DNA of 64,000 nucleotides from Pocillopora damicornis (Eukaryota). A program made the position numbers and the translations under genes. The stretch covers positions 372,001-436,000 of the forward strand of contig NW_020846122.1 in assembly GCF_003704095.1 (NCBI RefSeq), in the 5' to 3' direction. Each line of letters opens with the position of its first letter. Position 1 is the first letter of the stretch. The notes beneath the pieces were generated by a model. The model made no database searches and was not told where the DNA came from. It worked only from the letters and a program-made list of their open reading frames with translations. Below, in pieces: positions 12,001-34,700 of the stretch.

Positions 12001-15000
12001 AATCAATTATCAAAACCTCAAGGAACCTTGGGAAAAAATAATCATGGTTTTGAATTTTTAAACCGATAAAAAATAATATTTTGAACCACAACATATCCAA
12101 CCTTTCATCTTGTAGTTTCAAAATTTTGACAATAATAAATCAAATTAATTCAAGACAGGTGACAGTTTTAATGTACCAGTTGTTAGAAGTTCCAACATCC
12201 CTTCCCACAACCAACGGGAATTTGACCATTGTCTGTGCCTAGGGGGTAGAGAATTTGAACCTTACACAGCTGGGGTAAGGAATTTGAACAGGAAATGTCA
12301 AGTCTTTCCAGCCAAACACAAGTGTCAAATATTTAAATATGGAGGTGTTTGAGGTAAACAGTTCACTTTTGTGCGCAAGTACCGCAGAAGAAAAGATTCG
12401 TGCAAGGTCTAGATATTGAAGCTTGGTCTCTTTGAAGAAAGTCTTTGCCTTCTAGAAGAAAATTGGGTAGGTCATTTGAACACAATTTTTGCTACATGGG
12501 GTGGGAATTTAAATAAACCCATCTTCAAAAGTTCAAATGCCTTTGGGGAGATTACCTGGTGGAATTGCCCAGGGGAGGGTGGGGGGAGGGGGAGGGAAGT
12601 TGAAGCTTCAAATTGATTGGTGCATAAAATCAATATAATGCTAATAATATTAACAATAATGGTAATAATAAATTAATAAAAATCATATCTGATATCATTA
12701 TTATTACCATTACAACTTTATATCTCTTACCTAAAACATAAATTGATAGTGGTGCATTTGCACTGGTGAAAACAACTATGTCTATTGCACTTTCACCAAT
12801 ATTTGATGACCAGTCGATCTGCAAAATAAACCTCATTGGAACTCAGGCAACCTGAAGTACTTGTTTAAAAGCTATCCTAACTATTCTGTGGCATCTCATT
12901 CAACATGTAGAAACATGCAACTGAGCAAATGGCTGGTAATGCAAAAATTGTGATTTAAAATGTCAAAAAATATCATAATTTGTGTCAATAAATGCTACAT
13001 GATGGCAAATTGACATGGTAAAAATTGAAAAGAAAGTATGAAATTGTATGAGGAGGTTTGCTGCATATCTTAATTTCTGACTTACATTGCACAAATTTGT
13101 TAGGAATGATACAGATGGCAGCACTACACAAAATACCTGGCACTATTTAGAAGTTATAATGTACAAGTATATATGCAGCTTTCGCATCTCACGGAGACTT
13201 ACAGTTAACTTCTTTCCTGAAACTTTTTTATTTCCAATATCTTCTTTTGTGTTCGCATCTGTTGCCACAGCAAGAGTCTGGTATCTGTGAAATAAACAGC
13301 AAAAATTTTCAGTACATATGTGGTATTGACCAAGCAGTATGGGCTGGATATTGGCAGAGTTCTTTTGTCAATCCTGAGTTGGCAAGATGGACCCATCTTC
13401 TTGCCTTGGGCTAGCAAATCAGAATGAAAGATTTACTTTATATCACCCATGGGTCCTGCCAGCTATAATGTTTGTAATAAATGAAGCTGCAGTGGTGCTT
13501 TTTCCAGACACTTTTCTTGAATCAATTCAGACAGCTGATGGTTCACAATCAGACACCACTCTAATTTTTGAAATAAACTAATCAAAATAAAAAGCATTCT
13601 AGGCTCCACACAACACATTCATGAATATGAAAGCCATCTTCGTAGTAATGAACACTGCTTAAGCAGTGGGGAAAATAAGGCCTGCACAGGATTAAAAATC
13701 TATCACCTCTATGATACTGGTGCAGTACTCTACTGAGCTAACAAGCCACTGGGAGCTGGTTATTATGTTGGTTCTTACTAAACTTAATAGAGCACTGCAC
13801 TGCAGAGATCGCTTTCATATTCATTTCATAAAACCACAATTCACAAATATGATTTTCATATATCCACAGTCATCAACAAATTTGTTTTAAGCTGTGTATT
13901 TTAATATCTACATCTCAAGAGAGCTGTGGACCTTCTAAGCTTATGAACTAAATTCCACAGGAAAAGAAGTTCAACTTTACAACACAAGAGAACAGAAAAA
14001 TAAGAAAAAAAATTAACATTGGGTTTCAATAAACAGCAAGTTTGTGTACATATGGGTAAGTTCTCAAGAAATCATTGCCAGCTCTTAACCTTTTCACTCC
14101 CAGAAGTGATTGACATGTTACTTCTCCTCAAAATATCCATAAACCATCCAGCATACATGTAATGAGAATACTCGAACTTATCAGGTAGAAATTGTCATCT
14201 TGATTTAACACCAATTTCTTGTAACTAATTTACAAGGAAATGTGGAGAAGCTGAAGGGGAGAATTGACAATAACATTTTGGGAGTTACAGTAAAGGTCAA
14301 ACCAAGGCAACAATCTAGTCTAAATAAGAACTGCTTCAGGAAAAAGTCTTACTTGTAAGATTCAATCAGCCTTGATGAGCTACAGGTTACAAATGAATCT
14401 GTCTTTGGCACATAACTCAGAGGACCAGGTAAAAGAAAACCTGGGAGAAATCTCCCAAAGGCAAAACTCTCTTGTTCAAAGAATGACAACATTCCATCCA
14501 TGGACTGGATACATATGAAGTCCTTGTCTGAAAAAAGACCAACCAAAGAAATCAACACATAGAAATAGTATAGACTGAGAGAGACAACCTACATGTAACC
14601 ACATTATTCTGTCTCAATTATTATGCAAATTACCTTCAGATATTTTTTAAATGCTACCTACTGCCCAAAAGTAAATTGACAGTCTCGACTCAAAAATCCA
14701 TCCTCAATACTCAAAACTATTGAGAATTGAGAATTGAGGAGGAAAGATTGGGGATCAAGGATCAAGGATTGTGGATTGAGGGACTGTCAACTTACTTTTG
14801 CGTGGTACTATATATTTATCAAATTTCAAAGCACTGCCTTCTTGTTACAGAAAAAATTTATACCTAATAACATGGTTTTGATACAGTCAAAGGAAATATA
14901 CTTTATTATATCCTTTACTTTTGCAATTTTCAGACTGAAAGACAACAAACTCCTCCTACTTGGAAGACATGTTTTTGCATGACCAACATCTGTGTTAGTT

Positions 15001-19897: not shown

Positions 19898-22569
19898 TCA
19901 AGACGGCCCTGCAAATAAATGATTATAGGGATTGTAAACGCCGCCCGAAATTTAGTTGATACGGCTGAACCAAGCTGTGCGTCACTTGGATAGAGGTCCT
20001 CCCACCCCGACCGAAAAAAAAAAAAAAAAAAGAAAAGAGAGAGAGGTTGTTTTGTAATACGTCGAAGAAAAGCCAGTTTGACCTAAGAAATTTCCATCAA
20101 ATATTTTGACTCACGGGGGTAGGTGGTATAAAGAAATTTTACCCTCACCCTAACATCAGTATTCATATTCTCCATACTGTTCTCTGTACACGTACTAAGG
20201 TGTTGACAAGGAGAATTTGTCTAACAATCAAGAAATTCTTTAGTTGAAGATCATTCCCTTTCTTCTCGTGACATTAATGTGATTCAGAGGTAATATTGTA
20301 AAGAGAAATTAGATGCTGATTACTCTCAGGGATTTAAGGGTTAAAAGAGATATGTCCTCACCTCGGCTCTTTTCACAGACAAATGGCAGCGCGATCTCGC
20401 AGTTTAAGTCAAACCAAGTCACTTCACCATTCCTAATATGGATATTAACACAATCCTCGCCATCGCACCTCGTTGGTGCACCGCTGTCATAATGTTTGTC
20501 ATTTGGTTCGTCTCTGTCCCAGTTGAAATATGAAGATCGGTTGTTGAATTCTCCTTGGCCTATGTCGTTCCATACATATATCCCTGCATATACAAAAATC
20601 AAGTACCAGTCTCTGCTCTAATCATTATGGTGAAGAGGAGATGAGCTTGCGCATTTTGTATCTAAATCTGGTACGTCTAACTGAAAGCCCTGGAGACCAA
20701 TGTAGAACATGTCTAGACGGATTTCCTCTTATTTTTTTTCTAACAAATCTCTAAAGAAAAGTTTTTCAGGTATTTTAAGGAAGCAAGCGAAAACAGACGA
20801 GCCCGTTGATTCAAAATACTCCACTTTAGAAGGACTGCAGTAAGCCTCGATTTTGTGTTCTAGACCCAGTCCTCCTGACTTGTGTCCAAATATATCTTAC
20901 AACAGTTTAATTGTCAAATTTTGCGAAAAACACTGAATTACGCACAGGTTACCAACTTATGCTGTTAGATTCCAAACTAAAACGCAAAAGAAAAAAAAAC
21001 GTTTTCAAGCCTATGACAACAAAAGGACATATCACATAAGATCAATTCAATCTGGTACGAGAATTCGTCCGGCAGTTACTGAACAAATTTCAGATGCACT
21101 CTACTGTGCTTTATTAGACCTGTCCAAGCAAGAGCTAGTTTGTTCAAAAACACGAGCCTTTCCCCATTTAAAGAAACTACCTTCCCTATATTTCACGTTC
21201 GACCTGTGTCCCATCGTATGCTTACCAGCTTCCACTCGGTCGTTAAGTCCAATCCATATGTTTGTTTTTATCATATCTCCGATCAACCTGTTTTTTGAGC
21301 TACTGGTTATCTTTACGAGCCTAGCATTGTTGTCTCTGCACTTCTGTCGCGCCCGGTCCCACGTGACAGTCTCGCGCGCGTACCAGTAACACATACCATT
21401 ACCTGGACATTCCCAGCCAGAGAGACCTGAGGGGAAAACACGAAGAGGAAGTTTGTTTGTGTCTGCCACATTCAGAGTGGAGTTGCACTGCTAGACTGGT
21501 TTCCTGGAAAATTTCTTGATGACTTCACTGAAGCACTTCTGGGGAAATATGACCCCATGAATATTGTTCTTAACACATTTTGACGTCATCTCGGCAGTAT
21601 GGAATTTATTTTTTAAGTGTAAATGCATACATTTTTGTCGGGAGGAAAAATTTGGTGAGAACATCAGTGACACACGTGACTGCTTCTTGTTCGTTTTTAC
21701 CACATTTTGACGTTATCTGTGATAAATTACATGCCAGTACTCACCTTTTATGGACTCCCTCTCACATACAAAATTCCTGTGGGCTATACAAACCGCGTCG
21801 TTCCACTTCTTATTGGTGGTTTTCATCTCTACACAACTCTCTACGTTGCACTGTCCGTTAAAGTTGTTCGGTTCAGTGTTGGAGGGATTGGTTTCGTCCC
21901 ATGCAAAATATCTTGGCGTATCAAACTTGTTGTAGTTCCACAAGTACCGTGATTCTTTACTTCTGTCGTTCAATCCAATCCAAGCACCGTCGCCTGACTC
22001 AAGAAGCCCTCCTACAAATCTGCAGATAAACACGAGAAAAACATGACACAGTAAACATGACGCACTTGGTAGTTTATCACAGCAAGAGCTAATCTCGGTT
22101 TTTCAAAGCGAACAGTAGAGTTGCAACTCTCCTTGGATGTTACATCAGTTCTCAGTGCATTGGAAGTTCCTAAACCCAGACTGCAATTGGTTATTTCATG
22201 TTGTAAAGAGCCGAACTGCCGTGCGGTAGGTCGAGGGTTCAAGACTCATATCATGTAAGGTACATCATAATATCCTCAAATCTTGTAATAGTAGGAAAAT
22301 AACGAGAGCAGTTAAGATAAAAGGAATATCAAAACCAGCTGGATAATTGTAGACAATATTACAGGTTATAAAGAACTACTAAAAGATAGGGTAATTTAGT
22401 TTATCAACTGAGTTAATAACGTAAATTGGCCACCTTTTCGAGCGTTAGCCCTTCATCAGAGTGAATGACGAAGGGCTAACGCTCGAAAAATCAGCTTTTA
22501 AACTCTTTACGGTGGCCAATTTACATTATCATCTCAGCTGATAATCCTAAATTACCATGTTATACTCTT

Positions 22570-22603
<34 letters not shown>

Positions 22604-25600
22604 TTCCCCCTTTACTAAAAGATCGATTACAGACAAATGCTTACAGTCTAGGTTAAACAAACGTTTTCATTTTTTAAGCTTTCCTTCTCTTGCCGGCGCC
22701 GTTGCTTGTAAGCTATTTACTGGAATAATACAGAAAAAATAGAGATATGCTATCTTTTAATTATTCCTAATTTAACAATCTGCCAACGTAGCGTTTATTA
22801 ATTAAAGGTAGTTTGTATATTAGTGTTTGATGACGTGCCATTTTAAATTACTACTTCCGTGTGTTGCAATGGAGACGTGCGGAATGAAGTTCCACGTTTT
22901 TGGCATAATTTTAGCTGTGATGTCAATGCTACATTATGGAATGCAAAAGCATATTGTTACAAACACTGAGTGCTACAAAGGTAATTACAAATAATCCATT
23001 TTTCCCTAAGTTTAACTGAGAGGGAGATTTTTTTCAGTTTCGCAAATTACAGCAACGTGGCAAGAAAGGAACTATTTGATAAAATTTTCCGTCCTCACCA
23101 AGAGAGTATCAAACTCTAAAAAGTGATAAGAATGCTGTAATAGCACGCGTTAAGCAATCGGAAAAGGATTTTGCAAAGTCATCGAAAGAAAATTACATTT
23201 CTGTTCGTGGCCAAAGAGGTTGTGTCTTAGTTTTCCTTTTCTCGTACACCAATCGTTTAAGACTTTTTTACGACTATCATAAATTTCATTTTAACTTTCC
23301 AATGAATCTGACGCAAGCTTGAGAATATTAGCATTCGAACTGGCCTTCGAATGCGCGAAGAACTGTTGTTTTCAAAGAACTCCTTCTAAAGCGCGCGCAC
23401 AGTACGTCAGTTTCAGTAAAACAAAAAACGTCCTTTATTAGAGAGCTTACGCATCACGTTAACGGAAATAATAATAGGTAACAATCCAGTTTCCCGAAGT
23501 CTGTTTCTAATATATTGCTGTGAACGCTGTAAAGGCAAAAGGTGTTTTATGTTTAAAATTTAAAACCAAATGCTGCACATTCGATGGAAGAGACGAGAAG
23601 TATTTAACAGCATACAAATGCAGCAAGATAAAATCCGAATTCTGAGTGAGAGATTTTGGCGGTTTCTAAAGCAACCTTCTTACAGTATGTAAGTGAGTTT
23701 AATCATTCTCAATCGGCGCGTAAGTTTGCGACCAATCAAAAGTACAATTGTGGGAAAACAGAGTAGGAAAGATGGTAAATTAAGAGTTCGGTCTTGGACG
23801 AGCTCCCACGAAGAGTTTGACTATCAGATTTTGCGGTCCGATGTCCTACCACAGAGCCGCAGAGAACTCGCTATTGAGCTATAACGTAAAATAAGAGTTC
23901 GATTAAAACAAGCTTCCTTCATAATGCCAGGATCAGCAACGTCAAAACATTTGAACTAAATATCTGACAAATGAATAACATCAGGCTTTCTCTATTTTCT
24001 TAACTTGACGATCTGGCTCAAAAATTGCCACCGTTCTTCATTTTCTTTATGCAAATCCTTTGTTTCCTTTTCAGCACTCTACTGGATGATCATTACCATG
24101 GAGTTTTTCGCCGCAGTAGTGGCGGCAATCAAATTTTTCTGGTTTGATCGAGGTAAAAAGACCAGGTAATTACAGCAGTTTTACACTTTTAAATACATGT
24201 CAAATAACAGTAATGCCGTACAAGAGAGTACAACAAGACTTCACACGCAGAATGTAGCAACAAATTGCCTTTATCTGAATGTTTTCAGAGAATGTCTTCG
24301 TTCACAAACTTTAAAGTTAATAGCTGTTCGCAGGGTGACAGATAGTACAGCTCGACAGTTATGCTCACGTGTTTAATCTGCATTGTCTCCAGTCGCCCAC
24401 AAATGATTCAGGAGAGTTCAATCAATCATCAAGGAAAATTGCATTAAGTATCGTTCCTTGAATTCTACTACACCATTGTTTCTTTCACTTACAGACGTTT
24501 AAGTTGTAATACACAAAAAGTTTACCTTACAACGTCCTACATAATTCGTTATCATTACTTTTCCAGACGGTCCAAAGCAGAGGAAGAACCAGTTATTCCA
24601 CGGGGTGCTCAAGACTCACGAAAAGCGAGACAAAGAAACCTTAAATGCATGGCTCGCAATGCTCGATTGGCCAAAGAAACACTGTTATCTGGTGTACGTA
24701 TTTGTGTGTTAGACTGGTTTCAAGGACTGAATTCTAACAGAGGCTTTGATGAACGTGTCGTATTGCTTTGTTTCATTCAGACTGCAGACTGTTTGGGCCC
24801 ACGCGCCATTCTCCGCGTAACATCAAACAGACATTTGAGAACGTCCAATCAAGCGTCGCATTCTGTCGCGTACAGCGAAGAAAGCCGTTCTACTTCAGAG
24901 AAGGATGCATCTGTCCTTTTAACACCAAAGAGATATTACATGCCTCTCACTTTCCTTCAAGGCGTATTTAAAAGAGCCCGAGAATTTGGGAATATTACTG
25001 AAAAGAACTCAGAGAGAATATATAAACTCAGCATAGCTCGAGTATTGAGTATACACCGGGAGACATTCGCTTTCGTCGACGAGCGGGAATGCCGAGTCAT
25101 ATCTAGGCAAGATGTGACTTCGATCATGTTATTCAATGCAGAATTCGACTGTTTTGGATTTCTTAATATACCTCGATACATTAAAGACAGAGGTTCAAGA
25201 GCACTAGTCCTGCCACTTAAACAGGAAGAACGCACCTCTCCGATGCCTCCAAAGTGCGACGTCACTCGCTACTATTGTTGCGTAAGCTTGTCTTTAAACG
25301 ATAGTGGTGTTAGACAACAGCACGTTGGGTGCAAAGTAAGCAAATACTCTTTTCTTAGAAATTTGTCCCTGTCAACTGACATGGGTGATGCAGGAAACTT
25401 TGTGAAACGCATACCCCAAGCCAGTCAGCAATCTAAGAAAACAGAAAGTCCTACGGAAAGGCTAGCTTGTGGTTTTGCCCTCTTTGATGGGGAACATCCA
25501 AGAATCTTTGCCAATTCAAAAATATCATCAATCTCACATGATACGATATCGGATGACGAAAAGTCACGCAGTCAAGCACCAATCGTTTCCTTACTTTCCA

Positions 25601-28600
25601 CTGTTCCTGGGCAAATGTGCCAACAGGATTTGTCACGTTTTGAACAAAGGGAAGACACCAACAATTTCGTGGAGTTAGGAAATGAATATGAAGTTCTTCT
25701 CGGTGGAAACAGTAGTGGACTCTGCATAAACCAGAAAAACGTCAACAGTGGTATTGTAGGCCAAGTACTACATGATTCAAATGCTCACGTGAGTCACAAG
25801 CGTTTTAAACTGAAAGATTTTGAGAGAGGCTTTGATAATGTTGACAGTAAGTTCCAAATAAACTGCAACTCAAACGATAAAGACAAAGACCACGTTTCAG
25901 TGGACGACATCCACTCAGAAAATGTATCAATGTATGACAACGAGTCGAGTGACGTTTCCATGTATGAAAGCGAGTCTGATTATGGGTCGGATTACGAAAG
26001 TGAATCAGAACGTGAACGGGAGCAAGTCGGGAACAATGACCCTGAGCAAGTGCAACAATACGAGCAACATAATTTTCCCAACGGAAACGACGACATGGCA
26101 GAATACCCCGCCCTAATGGTTCCCTTAGTACATGCCATTCCTCAGCTAGTACAGGCGCACGCCTGGCCAAATGCGCCAGTCAATGCACAGGGAAACCAAC
26201 CAGGACCTCAAAACGATGCTATTACCGGGCAACTCGTAGATGAGGCACTAAATGTCGAATACAACCCACAGGCACTCCAACTCAATCCTGTACCACAGGA
26301 CGAAGCTGCAGAGCAAGGGGTTGGCCAGCAACTTCCTAATGCTCCAGGCCATAATCTGGCTCTATTTGGCCCCCATGATGACCTTGCAAACGAAGAACCA
26401 CAGGATGAAGCTCCCATGGGAGCCAATCTTTTATATCATCCACTTCCTCCCGTAGAAGATGAGATAGAAGCAGCGAATGGAGATGGTGAGGTTCCAGGTG
26501 CTGTAGTAGGCAATGAGGTTGCCTTGCTGGCAAATAATGATGTAGGTATCGATGAAGCACCACCCTTCGGGGAGGTAGTACCAGCACCACAGGCGCCTCC
26601 ACAACAGCCACAAGGGCAAAATCTTCCCAATGGTCAAAATCCTCAACAAGGCTATCATCCTCAGCATGGCAACCAGCCTCAACAGCAACCTAATACCTCT
26701 GGGCCGCTCAGAAGATTAGCTGCTGCAGTAAGGTATGTAAAGCGCAAACTAAGGAGGAGTCATAATGCACTTCCAATGTATGTCCTTGGGGCCCCAAGAG
26801 AAGAGCGACTGCCCGCTGGTTTAGAAGAGGCTCCTCCTCTTATTGGCGTGCCCCACCCTGAAATTGATGAAGAGACACAACCGACAAGCTTCTGTGCTTG
26901 TTTCGCCTTCCTTTTCCGACACCATGAGCATCCTGCACAAGGTTATCCATCACAGAATGAGCAAAGGGAAGAATTTGAGGAGCAGATAGCGTTGATTGGG
27001 CTGGATAATCAGGGCATGGAACAGGAGAATGACGAGCATGACATTGCGGCCGTCGAGCAGCTGATGGCAGTTCCTGACGAACAAATAGAGGCGATTGCGC
27101 CTCTAGTAGAAGTAATCTAGAATCTTCTTCTGGTTACCGTAAAAAAGCTGTATAACAATTAAGGAAAGCGAACAAAAGCAGATGGACTCAAAGGTACAAA
27201 AGAGAAACTTGTTCTCTGTAAATATGTTTTTTTTTTTTCATTTTCGTAGTATTTGTATGCGATGCGTGCAATGATAAATAAAATAATAAATAAAGATAAA
27301 TTATGAGTACAAAACCATTTTTTCTTTCATGCAGAAATTTGGGAAAAGGGGAGGGGAGGGTTACCACCAACATCATTAATTTAACCCATTAACTCCCAAG
27401 ATCTCATGAGTAATTCTCCTTACTGTCTGCCAAATGATTCTTAATATGTTAGTTTGGAGAATTTGGTATCAGATCAATTACGAATCCCATAATTGATATT
27501 TTTCTTTATTCTCATCACTTGTCTGCATGATATTGTACAGATATAGTAAGGAGAAATTCTGTCTTGATCACTCACGGGAGTTCAAGGGTAAATCAGAGCA
27601 CTCTTGTTCCAAACCTAATGTCCAGTCCGTTTACTTCCTTATTTCCACCTTCCCGTTAACAAGACGAAGCTTCCTGAACCGGAAGATGGCAATATTTAAC
27701 AGTAGGTTTGTATTGGACTGACCAAATCGCTATTTCAAACAATTTTCGAAGCAAATATTCACATGTTTTATCAATATGAAGTCGCAAAAGATGATACCAA
27801 AGGTAATCGTGAACTTAATCAAAACACTTCTTACTTATTTTCCACGCTATTGTCGATGGTAGCAAGTTTGGCTCCAAATTGTCCCTGGCAGTAAAAATAT
27901 GCGTTCAGCCAAGTCTTCGGTTTAGAGAAATATCGGTAGCACTTGCCATTAGAATAATGCCAATCTTTCAGACACATGGCTGGAAAGAAACCAGAAAATT
28001 GTCTTAGATGAGGAAAAATGCGAAAACGGTGATATCTCAAAAAAAACAAACAAACAAAATGAACCCAAAAACAAGACATGACAGGATAACGAATGCTACA
28101 TGAGTGAGCTGGAAAGGATGCTTAGCGTAATTATAATTTTCAATAAAGAAGGGAGGGAAAGGAAGAGAAGTGAGCAAAATCACACGGAATTGTATGTATG
28201 TATGTATGTATGTATGTATTGGCGATACCAGACCACAACATCGGAAACTTCGTTCACAACTCTTTGCGAATCAACCTTTCCCTTTTTCCCTTTCCCCTTC
28301 TCATTTCTCCGTGTCCATTCTCTTCACTCCCATTCTCCTCCTTATTCTATCCACTTCTTTAAACTGACTACCGAATTTTTCCTTCAAATACATATCACCT
28401 GACTCGGACGTGAGAGGGGCCTGGAACGGTAGAAAGGAAAAACAGGAACCGGAAGATATACTAAGGGGTGTCGGTGGCAATGATGCAGCCCCTTTAGAAA
28501 TAATTAAATAAACTTTACAGCAACTTAGAAAAGAATGACAAATATCGGATGGAAAAGGTGAGGAAATCTAAATTCTTATTCCGCGTTTTTTTTTCGTGAG

Positions 28601-30742: not shown

Positions 30743-31728
30743 GTATGTTCTCAGGACAAAATATTTTGTTTATGACACATTCCGCGATCTAATTGATCGG
30801 TTATGGTCGATCGCATTGTTAGCCGACATACTTTGGGGATTGCAAAATACTATTTCTTGTTTCCTAGTACGTTTTCCTCGCCGTTGGCGCGAAGGACCTT
30901 CGATATATTTATTTCAAGTTGAATTTGTAACTATGTTACAATCAAGGAGTCTTGAAAGTGTCATTGATTTTCGTAAAAGCGCTCTAGAAGCTCTGAGAGA
31001 TGTTCAGTTCTTTTCAGAGATGTTCAATTCATTTCAGATATCAAAAATTTCGTTTTCTCGCCCAAAATCGTTCTTAGTGAATTTCATTTAATAATCTATA
31101 ATGAACATTTATTCAACGTTTACTCCACATATTTATAGAAATTGCGATTCATGATTCAAAAATAGCTTATTCTTGTGGTGAAATACAACCCGAACTATGG
31201 CTCTAATCGATCAATAACAAAACAATTATTAACGCAATTATACACCAGTATTCAGCGGAAGAGACGTTTTGTTGTTTGAGAACAGGGATATCAAATTAAG
31301 TTTGCAGTCAATGAAGAACGTTTGGGCCTAATTTTGCACAAGATCACCTTTATGTACTTGGGAGTGTGAGGTCCTACAACCTCGTGATACGGAAGTACAG
31401 CTCTTGCAATTTATAGTTTGTTTTTGGGAAGGAGCTTTCGTCTTTTGACAGAGTCTTGTGAAAGTTTGTGAAGGGGATTTACATATTTACTGTATTCATT
31501 ACTCATCTTTTCTTTTACAGACTTGTACATTGGTCAGCTGATACCTTACATCATGAAATACTATAGACATATCTAGTTGTGAAAGGAGAGACTTCCTGAT
31601 AATTTGAAGTATGGAAGGAGTGATAGAGTATTTTGACTTGCCCTTAAGACACCATAATATCTGTTTACGGTGGATCTGATCAAGGATGAAACAAAAATTG
31701 ATGCAAAAACCTTGATTTATTGATTGCA

Positions 31729-34700
31729 ATGGGGGGAAGCACTTCCACTTTAGAGCAGAGTTCATCTGAACCAACCCTTGTGCGTGTGCCTCGATATACC
31801 TTGGAGGAGAAGAGGAAAAAACAATCAAAATTCAACACCCTTAAGAAAAAGCTCTCAAGGAGTAAAAGTGGTTTCAAGAGCCATGATCATGGAAAAATGC
31901 TACGAGAGTTGACACAAACATGGACAGTTCAGGAGATCAATGCTTTAGTTGAAGAATATGAAGCAATGATGAATGTAAAAGAACTAAAGAATCAGACCAA
32001 TCTTGTAAGGCAATCTGCGCCAAGTTTGAAGAAAGACCTTTTACGGCTTCTGGAAGAAGGGATTTGTGCTGACACAACACTTATATTTGAGAACACTCAA
32101 TTCCATGTCCACAAGGCTATTCTTACGTGTAGATGTCCTTATTTCAAGGATCTTTTATCGCAGCATACAGAGCAGCATCCTGTTATTCAAATGGAGTTTA
32201 AAACGGAAGGAATGACTACAGAAATTTTTTCGGCTCTGCTATGTTACTTGTACACAGGAGATTTTATGACAAAAAAATCAGGCTTAGAATACATTGATGT
32301 TCTAATGAATTTGGGTGAAGAGTTTGGCACACCCAATGTTTTGGAACAGGATTTAAACTTGCTTTTCAAATGTGGTGAATATGCTGATGTCGCCTTTGTT
32401 TTTCCTGCTCAAGACTCTTCAGACACATACGTGGCTGCAGATGGCAATGCAATTTCTGATCAGACATATGAGATTTTGTGCCATAAAGCTGTTCTCTGTG
32501 CAAGATCACACTACTTTAGATCACTTTTACTCAAATCTGACTTGGGCTCTAATGATTGTCTAAAGACAGGTTCTGGAGTGAAAAGACTTGTTTTAGATGA
32601 ATCAGTGATAACTAGGCAGTACACTCGCATAGCTTTACAATGCATGTATACGGACTCTGTGGATCTGTCGTCTGTAGTTAAGTGGAGCTCTGAGGACAGG
32701 AAATATTGTTCACCCAGAACTCATAAACTTTTGACATCAGCAGAAATTGCCATGGAAGTATTTGAAGTGGCAAGCTTTATCGACTTACCAGTACTGATCC
32801 AAGGTAAATAAATTTATTTATTCATTATAAAGCCAAGATCACACAGATGACTTAACAGCACAACAGGATATTGTTATGTCTGTTTTGTTGTGTTACTTAA
32901 ATAGGATTTCACTGCTAACATGATGATGTGATGATCTTCCTTATTTTTACTTGGTTATGCCCTTATGTCACTTGTATGACCTATGCTTATGTTGTATTGT
33001 GTTACTATTACATAAATATATATTGGGTGTTTAAAATTACATAAGGTTAAAATGGTGTCAGTTTTGTTTAATTTTAGTTTCCTTTGTTCTTTAAAAGACC
33101 TCACTAATGTACCTGGAATGAAGGATATAGCAAATCAATCTAGTTTGAAATCATTTGACCTGAGAAAAATTGCTTTAAATACAAGATGTACAAGTTCACA
33201 CCATGAACCTGACAATATTGTGATGTTCTTATGTTGATATGCTGAAAAAAAATTTGTATTTCACTTGCCTTCAGCTTGTTAGTTACAATCTTTTTTGTGT
33301 TCTTCTTGCAACTCATGGGGCTTATAACACACATATGAAGACCAACCTAAGGATGAGAACCATAAATCATTCTTTTTTTACTAGCTTATCAGTTTATTCA
33401 AAATACCTCTCTTGGTTTTTTTGCAATGTCTGTTTTATCAGGCTGCGAAGACATCATCTTGGAGGAATTATCTCCGTCCACTCTTCTGCCAACGCTGGAA
33501 TGGAGTTCCCTCCCTCATGGATCTGACTGGGTCTACAGGCAAGCCATGCACTTCCTACAGGAAGAATTTGTCAACATCGCTCAGTCTGACATGTTTACTC
33601 TGATGCCAAGGAAGTATTTGATAGAGGCACTGAAATCTGATTTCTTGCAGGTGTGTGTATGTAATCTTTTGCCAGTGAATTCTGGTCTTAGCCCTTTTAC
33701 ACCTCAGCAACTGTGTAATACAAACACTTCAGACTGCTCTCCTCATATTTTCTTTGGTACCGACTAGGAGAACGTTTTTGACAATCCACAGCTTCTTTAG
33801 GTGCTACTGTTTTTTCATTCTCACCACCTTTAAGTTCAATTTAGCAGTGAAACTGTGAGGAGAAATTGAACATTTCCTACTGTTAGGAGTTAAAGGGTTT
33901 ATAATATGCAAAAAAAAATTGCGTGCATCTGACTGACTGAAAATATGCATTTTCATGTAACATGAGTGCAAAGCTGTAACACATACTGTGAAAAGTCAGG
34001 CTAGGTTAGTTTCTCCTGAACCTTTTTTTGGGCTACAGGGAGCTGTTGAATTTTAATTTTAAAAATCTGTTAATAGTATTTTATTGTAATAAATTATTTA
34101 TATAACTTGTTCATAGGTCACATTACTTACCATAGTCAATGTAATAAGTGTCCTCTTTCATTCTTTCTTAGTTGTTACACAGTATTGATCAATTTTTCCT
34201 CCTTTAGGCATGTGAACACAATGTTCTACTGTCTGTCATTAAATGGGGTGAGGCACAGGTCATTCGTCAAATGAATGAACAAGGTACTGACATGAATATT
34301 ATTTCTGAAATTAAAACTGTCATTGAATTATGTTCTCCTTTTCTCAAATCAATAATCAATCCATGAATCAAGGTCTATCATTCAACTGTAATGTAATGGA
34401 TGGAGGTTAGTGATAACATGTCCTTACTAAGGCCCATCGTGGAGCAGTCCATATGAATTTTTAAGGTGCTTTTTTCTTCATTGTTGTTATTTTTGTGGAG
34501 AATAAGAGAAGAGGTAAAAACTAGTGAAAAATCTCTACTGGAAGGTAAAGAGGTAGCAACTCAACACTGGTTGCATTATGAACACAAAGTAAATAAGTAA
34601 GTAACAAAGGAAATAACTATATTTCAACTTGGGTTGATGTGGCCAATTAGGCCCCAAGCAGTACATGCTAATACGCTGAGAAAAGTATAAGAAAATAAGG

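Follow-up and report, generated by a model that had tools for sequence, protein, structure and literature searches.

A 64,000-nucleotide (nt) stretch of the Pocillopora damicornis genome (assembly GCF_003704095.1, contig NW_020846122.1, positions 372,001 to 436,000 of the forward strand; hereafter the window, with coordinates counted from its first letter) carries a minus-strand Ig/C-type-lectin gene, one intron of which (22020–27834) holds an entire second gene (22869–27294) on the opposite strand. The host intron is delimited by RNA: in assembled contigs from two runs (X1 and X12), each of a different and independent study, 22019 is followed immediately by 27835, and the intron ends CT..AC, which read GT..AG on the minus strand, and a contig from a further run (X11) joins 22019 to 27838 with three extra letters. 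The initial annotation had placed this intron within a C-type lectin domain, and a single Pfam Lectin_C domain is indeed divided between the two flanking exons. Its C-terminal two thirds are encoded by the exon at 21713–22019 (minus) (Lectin_C positions 37–107, E = 5.9e-9; 37.1 bits for the exon taken as 21713–22033, above the curated cut-off of 22.6). The exon at 27835–27990 (minus), whose 5′ limit is approximate, encodes the start of the same domain (positions 2–29), a match that is weak alone (14.9 bits by itself for the exon taken as 27831–28079).

The nested gene contains an 823-codon plus-strand open reading frame (ORF) at 24649–27120, corresponding to 823 amino acids. Read directly from the sequence, the full gene comprises three plus-strand exons (22869–22980, 24075–24165 and 24567–27120) with 112, 91 and 2551 coding nt, which make up 918 codons; the exons were searched and analyzed one by one, each separately. 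Exon 1 begins with the ATG, encodes a first hydrophobic segment (a signal peptide or first membrane helix; Kyte-Doolittle 19-residue mean 1.64) and ends in phase 1 at a GTAAT donor starting at 22981. Intron 1 (22981–24074, GT..AG) closes with a pyrimidine tract and AG (24073–4) before exon 2, which encodes a predicted membrane helix (mean 1.89) and, next to it, a basic juxtamembrane stretch rich in Arg and Lys, and ends in phase 2 at a second GTAAT donor, from 24166. Intron 2 (24166–24566, GT..AG) likewise ends in a pyrimidine tract and AG (24565–6), and exon 3 runs to a TAG stop at 27118–27120; the protein reads ...RGKKT-R-RSK... across the junctions. Directly 5′ of the ATG lies a block (22780–22868) with putative promoter function, in which TGACGT (22831–36) and CTTCCG (22854–59) both fall within 40 nt of the ATG, and the 3′ untranslated region (UTR; 27121–27294) ends in three AATAAA hexamers, overlapping or adjacent, at 27277–27294. 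The three-exon model of ~918 amino acids with in-phase splice sites, the two upstream motifs, the AATAAA cluster and the two small hydrophobic exons had all been put forward in the initial annotation and are borne out by this reading.

The gene is present in a single copy in the 234-Mb, 4393-contig genome, whether the query is the window's protein or a distant family member. Close relatives, recovered from Tara coral metagenomes and Logan assemblies as loci L002–L005, differ from the window by 1–3% substitutions in coding and flanking DNA, with locally higher values in the introns of L002 and L003. A disrupted or absent frame in such relatives had been raised as a possibility at the outset; all four retain the ATG, both donors (AG|GTAAT at exon 1), both acceptors and an open frame through the three exons, and no stop or frameshift occurs in any orthologue. 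One apparent exception, the 501-residue protein P0006, was rejected as a disrupted orthologue, since it is cut by a 100-N scaffold gap and not by a mutation. Insertions and deletions are strongly depleted in the coding parts: between the window and L002 we counted 14 events in 2075 non-coding bases and a single event, of 27 nt and in frame, in 2756 coding bases, a split expected by chance with a probability of ~7e-5 (binomial estimate), and against L003 the counts are 8 non-coding and 1 coding, the latter again of 27 nt. Intron 1 is among the parts that carry such events. Substitutions are distributed differently along exon 3, where the overall level in the closest pair is about the same as in the introns. 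Within the genus, the ratio of nonsynonymous to synonymous substitution rates (dN/dS) is 0.4–0.8 for exon 3 overall, with values of 0.4–1.8 over 24567–25602 (about 1 across the first 345 codons), 0.6–1.5 over 25603–26682, and 0.2–0.3 in the last 240 codons, where 10 of the 17 changes between the window and L002 are silent. The dN/dS check suggested earlier therefore returns a divided answer, constraint in the C-terminal 240 codons and values near 1 in the first two thirds. The internal ATG at 24649, with which the 823-codon ORF opens, is TTG in L002 and ATT in L006; because it is not conserved, translation must start upstream.

Comparison with more distant loci separates the gene from its surroundings. 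When the 5.8-kb host intron is aligned with L006 and L007, only parts of the nested gene align: the promoter block, exon 1, exon 2 together with ~150 nt beyond it, exon 3, and the 3′ UTR, within which the alignment stops at the AATAAA cluster (27290–27294). In the promoter block, ATGACGT, TTCCG and GCAATGGAG are invariant among the window, L006 and L007 (alignment A1). Exon 1 keeps its ATG and donor in L006 and L007, with a 9-nt in-frame deletion, and exon-1-like peptides with an ATG occur in L008, L009 and L012; the acceptor AG and donor AG|GT of exon 2 are kept in L006, L008, L009, L010 and L012. Exon 1, exon 2 and the exon-3 acceptor are in the same phase in L006 and L007, and the L006 exon-3 acceptor lies at the same place. 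Exon 2 differs from that of L006 by 8 silent and 9 replacement changes (dN/dS ~0.18), and the middle of exon 3 is 67% identical in DNA to L006 and L007. For the C-terminal module, defined below, distant pairs give proportions of changed nonsynonymous sites (pN) of 0.19–0.37 against 0.39–0.93 for synonymous sites (pS); where silent sites are saturated (pS 0.74–0.93), pN is 0.25–0.37. The depletion of indels, the excess of pS over pN in distant pairs and the kept splice sites and phases show that the coding frame is under purifying selection and is no chance ORF.

The genomic setting is conserved as well. In L003, L006, L007, L008, L009 and L010, the exon for the C-terminal part of the lectin domain precedes the nested ORF and is carried by the other strand, and the N-terminal lectin exon lies just downstream of the long ORF, again on the opposite strand, in L006–L010 (tblastn, 65–83% identity); nesting between the same two lectin exons thus recurs in five other loci (L006–L010) from four assemblies, in line with the synteny that the initial annotation had asked about, though it is not seen within the 15-kb contig of L012. 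More broadly, the nested ORF occupies a syntenic site, between lectin exons and upstream of a gene with a BTB domain, in L003, L004 and L006–L010. The host lectin exon has a dN/dS of 0.14 in a distant comparison. Synteny, splice sites and phases, and selection in distant relatives together identify a conserved, spliced, protein-coding gene, and we regard it as very likely that the nested locus is a genuine conserved three-exon gene. Judged by its sequence, it is a single-copy protein-coding gene of stony corals that was previously unnamed.

Several features of the gene structure and its surroundings deserve mention in their own right. The first ~150 nt of intron 2 (24166–24319) are ~73% identical to L006 and L007, and the remainder of both introns is unalignable; part of this block is tandemly duplicated in L006 (9780–9930). 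The block might control splicing or transcription, or might serve as an alternative exon. If intron 2 were retained, translation would end just past the donor (AGG TAA) and yield a two-helix peptide of 68 residues. In L010 (6100–9830), exon-1-like and exon-2-like hydrophobic exons, in three and four copies, alternate upstream of the long ORF, and the copy nearest the ORF is without an ATG; judging from this arrangement, additional membrane helices may be encoded in the L010 lineage. In L006, and in no other distant relative, an ORF (13986–14579) that weakly matches a GIY-YIG nuclease lies just 3′ of the nested ORF; a mobile element that entered the host intron in this lineage alone is its probable source. 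The BTB-domain gene (31543–32805, plus strand), downstream of the lectin gene in the window, is conserved at ~81% DNA identity and in the same relative position in the distant loci examined, L012 excepted; it lies a few kilobases downstream in L006–L010, and a BTB gene is also found downstream at the locus of P0016.

The protein belongs to a family that extends over several coral assemblies, and the "orphan" status it was first given no longer applies. Searches with its C-terminal part retrieved P0007 and P0008 (1157 and 1174 residues) at 52–53% identity, and homologues in several other assemblies are 34–53% identical over the C-terminal module. A HMMER scan of 1.8 billion cluster representatives matched 16 proteins, the distant ones covering only query residues ~570–850, at their own C-termini. 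The family has so far appeared only in sequences resembling stony-coral genomes or coral metagenomes. No member has a name or an NCBI/UniProt source in the searched collections, and none matched a named protein, coral skeletal proteins included, among 5.8 billion proteins and the 1.8 billion cluster representatives. The family may therefore be missing from, or unnamed in, current gene sets, and the nested-gene model can be added to coral annotations.

The product of exon 3 falls into three parts. Its first third (24567–25602) corresponds to degenerate tandem repeats of ~41–47 residues, about eight of them in P0007. Scored by a diagonal-score scan, these internal repeats are significant in P0007, P0009 and P0011 and undetectable in the protein of the window, where the alignment shows a contracted form of the region; in alignment A4, most repeats are deleted in the window's lineage. 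AlphaFold2 assigns the N-terminal 345 residues of the exon 3 product a mean predicted local distance difference test (pLDDT) score of 30. The proposal that a ~250-residue Cys/aromatic region here is probably folded must give way, since what is found is a degenerate repeat array with this low pLDDT and a within-genus dN/dS of ~1. The middle part (25603–26682) is acidic and rich in Ser, Asp, Glu and Tyr, then passes into Pro/Gln/Ala-rich low complexity, as seen from composition in 50-residue blocks. The acidic, Pro- and Gln-rich composition that was noted for the tail is confirmed, with dense Ser/Asp/Glu/Tyr clusters, but the same stretch also contains the best-conserved segment of the protein, a C-terminal module of ~145 residues (last ~145 codons and stop, 26683–27120) delineated by alignment, HMMER and dN/dS.

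Alignment A3 of this module shows 16 invariant columns across 13 proteins. In order, it comprises a basic helix near RYVKRKL, the motif PMY..GAPREER..GLEEAP, an acidic loop, CF.FLF/YR, VQEYPLQ..EFEE, and an acidic tail that ends in one or two hydrophobic residues. AlphaFold2 gives a mean pLDDT of 49 for the C-terminal 250 residues, with one helix and the rest at low confidence; the RYVKRKL helix is the sole element modeled with moderate confidence. The initial annotation had not recognised the region that follows the membrane segments, and our searches also reveal no recognisable domain: Pfam assigns no family to the window's protein or to eight of the nine relatives examined, and in the ninth (P0011) the one match, to LolA_like, reaches 16 bits against a curated cut-off of 30; a Protein Data Bank (PDB) sequence search with the family profile yielded only chance matches (E of at least 0.4), and the ESM Atlas gave no usable match. 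From these alignments the conserved, presumably functional part of the protein lies at its far C-terminus and not in the N-terminal region, and the proteins appear to constitute a new, unnamed, coral-restricted family with a sharply conserved C-terminal motif module.

We propose that exons 1 and 2 would form a short N-terminal membrane anchor, either a signal peptide and one helix or a two-helix hairpin, with no more than ~15 residues outside the membrane. The basic run that comes after helix two would place the remaining ~850 residues in the cytoplasm, as a largely disordered tail that would pass from the variable array of ~45-residue repeats through the acidic Ser/Tyr-rich stretch and the Pro/Gln-rich spacer to the ~145-residue module, whose motifs may recruit cytosolic partners. 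Tethered scaffolds and adaptors are built in this way, with an extended disordered tail that closes in short conserved motifs, and we tentatively suggest that the product may be such a membrane-tethered cytosolic protein. The C-terminal module offers a concrete target for interaction screens. Taken as a whole, a real coral nested gene whose product is predicted to be a membrane-tethered scaffold and whose nesting is a historical accident is the reading that we consider probable.

A number of observations weigh against this reading. Within the genus, evolution is almost neutral over the first two thirds of the tail. Much of the stretch is covered by ten runs recorded as RNA, and four of these, from four studies, were compared with it as assembled contigs, which carry no strand, level or rare junctions. 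The contigs are collinear with the genome through both predicted introns (X1, 22585–24486; X11, 23408–25930; X5, 23802–25930), and no nested-gene junction is found among the 15 joints listed of 82, which comprise only the host junction and joints of the flanking repeats. The contigs start 5′ of the predicted promoter, where they border on a dispersed repeat, and their depth over the nested gene is low; in three of the four runs it is similar to that of the host intron elsewhere. These collinear contigs are most simply read as unspliced host pre-mRNA or carried-over DNA; because assembled contigs drop rare forms and have no strand, the missing junctions are not evidence of absence. The Tara contig L012 (15.2 kb) has the gene and no lectin exons within 9.4 kb upstream or 3.2 kb downstream, so that either the nesting is not universal or the intron there is much larger. 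The only match of the L012 family member in the window's genome is the nested locus described here; it is therefore probably an orthologue in a different genomic setting. Its upstream hydrophobic exons are present, and a sodium:dicarboxylate-symporter-like ORF lies 2 kb downstream of it. Finally, Pfam, PDB and the ESM Atlas identify no partner, domain or known motif class, and the predicted topology, disorder and scaffold role derive from the sequence alone.

Among other accounts, the one that fares best holds that the product is an extracellular or secreted acidic protein, such as a component of skeletal matrix or mucus, with its acidic Ser-rich tail facing outward. Acid-rich biomineralization proteins resemble tails with dense Ser/Asp/Glu/Tyr clusters of the kind seen here, the family has been met only in apparent stony-coral genomes or coral metagenomes, and exon 1 could be a cleaved signal peptide. 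On the other hand, given a signal peptide, the Arg/Lys cluster that follows the second hydrophobic helix predicts a cytoplasmic tail under the positive-inside rule; the conserved module, with its basic helix and unpaired cysteines, fits the cytosol better; and the two large searches returned no named match, with coral skeletal proteins included in them. We consider an outward-facing tail unlikely. Release of the tail to the nucleus, suggested by the resemblance of the basic helix to a nuclear-localization signal, is less likely still.

The nesting might also be functional, as the initial annotation had proposed, with host and nested gene forming a unit in which interference or shared regulation leaves each cell with either the secreted lectin or the membrane scaffold, within one recognition or signalling pathway. 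The persistence of the arrangement in the same lectin-domain intron at five other loci from four assemblies, whose silent sites are partly or fully saturated against the window, speaks for this, as does the transcriptional interplay between mammalian host and nested genes described in two reports (PMC11694760, PMC13309782). Splitting a nested pair requires a precise rearrangement, however, and conserved nesting is therefore expected without function, as the inertia of any such pair. Nested genes are common; the downstream BTB gene is just as stably linked, which indicates that the whole block may simply be a stable syntenic unit; L012 carries the gene on a 15.2-kb contig free of lectin exons; and the RNA contigs, which carry no strand, show none of the junctions of the nested gene among the joints listed. 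A functional unit is accordingly quite unlikely, and its most specific form, in which antisense transcription through the lectin-domain intron makes lectin and nested gene mutually exclusive, is a conjecture to which we give still less weight. If it were true, a coral cell could switch between a secreted glycan sensor and a membrane scaffold, perhaps when it takes up symbionts or meets an immune challenge, and such coupling would account for the persistence of the pair across several coral lineages. The best reading of the nesting is a historical accident that cannot easily be reversed rather than functional coupling to the lectin, and the nested arrangement itself is ordinary. As a clean and anciently conserved cnidarian pair, the locus could nevertheless serve for testing transcriptional interference outside mammals and flies.

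Two accounts dispute the gene model rather than its interpretation. In the first, the gene consists only of the single-exon ORF of 823 amino acids from the ATG at 24649, and the two hydrophobic exons before it are frames open by chance. Gene callers of the prokaryotic type predict 24649–27120 alone, and the RNA joints listed (15 of 82) include none to the small exons. Against these stand the TTG and ATT found in place of that ATG, the conservation of both small exons, including splice sites, phases and hydrophobicity, far beyond that of the surrounding intron, and the codon-wise pattern followed by the silent changes in exon 2. A single-exon gene is thus very unlikely.

Two copies of a very high-copy dispersed repeat (22389–22615 and 27380–27593) bracket the nested gene within the host intron, and neither is found at these positions in L006. 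RNA-contig depth over this repeat reaches thousands to tens of thousands, with joints that link the two copies on opposite strands. A repeat scan of 22200–27800 found no long repeat pair, and Rfam at the gathering threshold gave no match in 21500–28500.

That the frame is a decaying relic of a transposon, virus or retrogene, or is otherwise non-functional, seems most improbable: the near-neutral dN/dS of the first two thirds within the genus, substitution levels like those of introns among the closest relatives, the lack of a domain match and the position between two repeat copies point that way, but the gene is single copy, syntenic in distant genomes, free of stops and frameshifts (the truncation of P0006 being a scaffold gap), strongly depleted of coding indels, far lower in pN than in pS between distant pairs, and in L006 without the flanking repeats at these positions. 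Its introns, with their conserved splice sites, show that it is not a retrocopy. A match to a transposon or viral ORF, against which the initial annotation had cautioned, was looked for and such an origin rejected, there being one copy, no transposon or viral Pfam domain, and a syntenic site in relatives.

The conserved three-exon coral gene has counterparts in arrangement among other opposite-strand nested pairs, such as the LRRTM genes inside alpha-catenin introns of vertebrates (PMC3933685) and 2mit inside timeless2 of Drosophila (PMC3786989). In each, as here, a membrane-protein gene lies on the other strand within one intron of an unrelated host, in an arrangement kept over long evolution and lost in some lineages. 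The coral product differs in having no homology to the LRRTM or 2mit proteins, almost no ectodomain and no recognisable domain, and the coral host intron differs in that it splits a lectin domain.

With regard to the product, the transmembrane adaptors of vertebrate immune cells of the LAT, PAG and NTAL type bear a resemblance to the coral protein that we treat as a lead only. Hydropathy and low pLDDT fit a coral protein that would be built as they are, with very little outside the cell, an anchor in the membrane and, in the cytoplasm, a long disordered tail with conserved short motifs, several containing tyrosine, that could dock partners; inspection of alignment A3 by eye only recognised no known class of SH2-type tyrosine motif. 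The coral protein has no sequence similarity to these adaptors (Pfam, PDB), possesses two hydrophobic segments where they have one, and has a tail four to five times longer; it is also without their juxtamembrane Cys-x-x-Cys, the sequence after its helix being basic and free of Cys. Coral acid-rich and skeletal organic matrix proteins offer a second comparison. The nested product shares with them dense acidic Ser/Asp/Glu stretches and, as far as seen, restriction to corals, although no homology to any named protein was found. Its acidic tail is predicted to be cytoplasmic, and what has been conserved in it is a basic, motif-bearing module rather than the acidic stretch.

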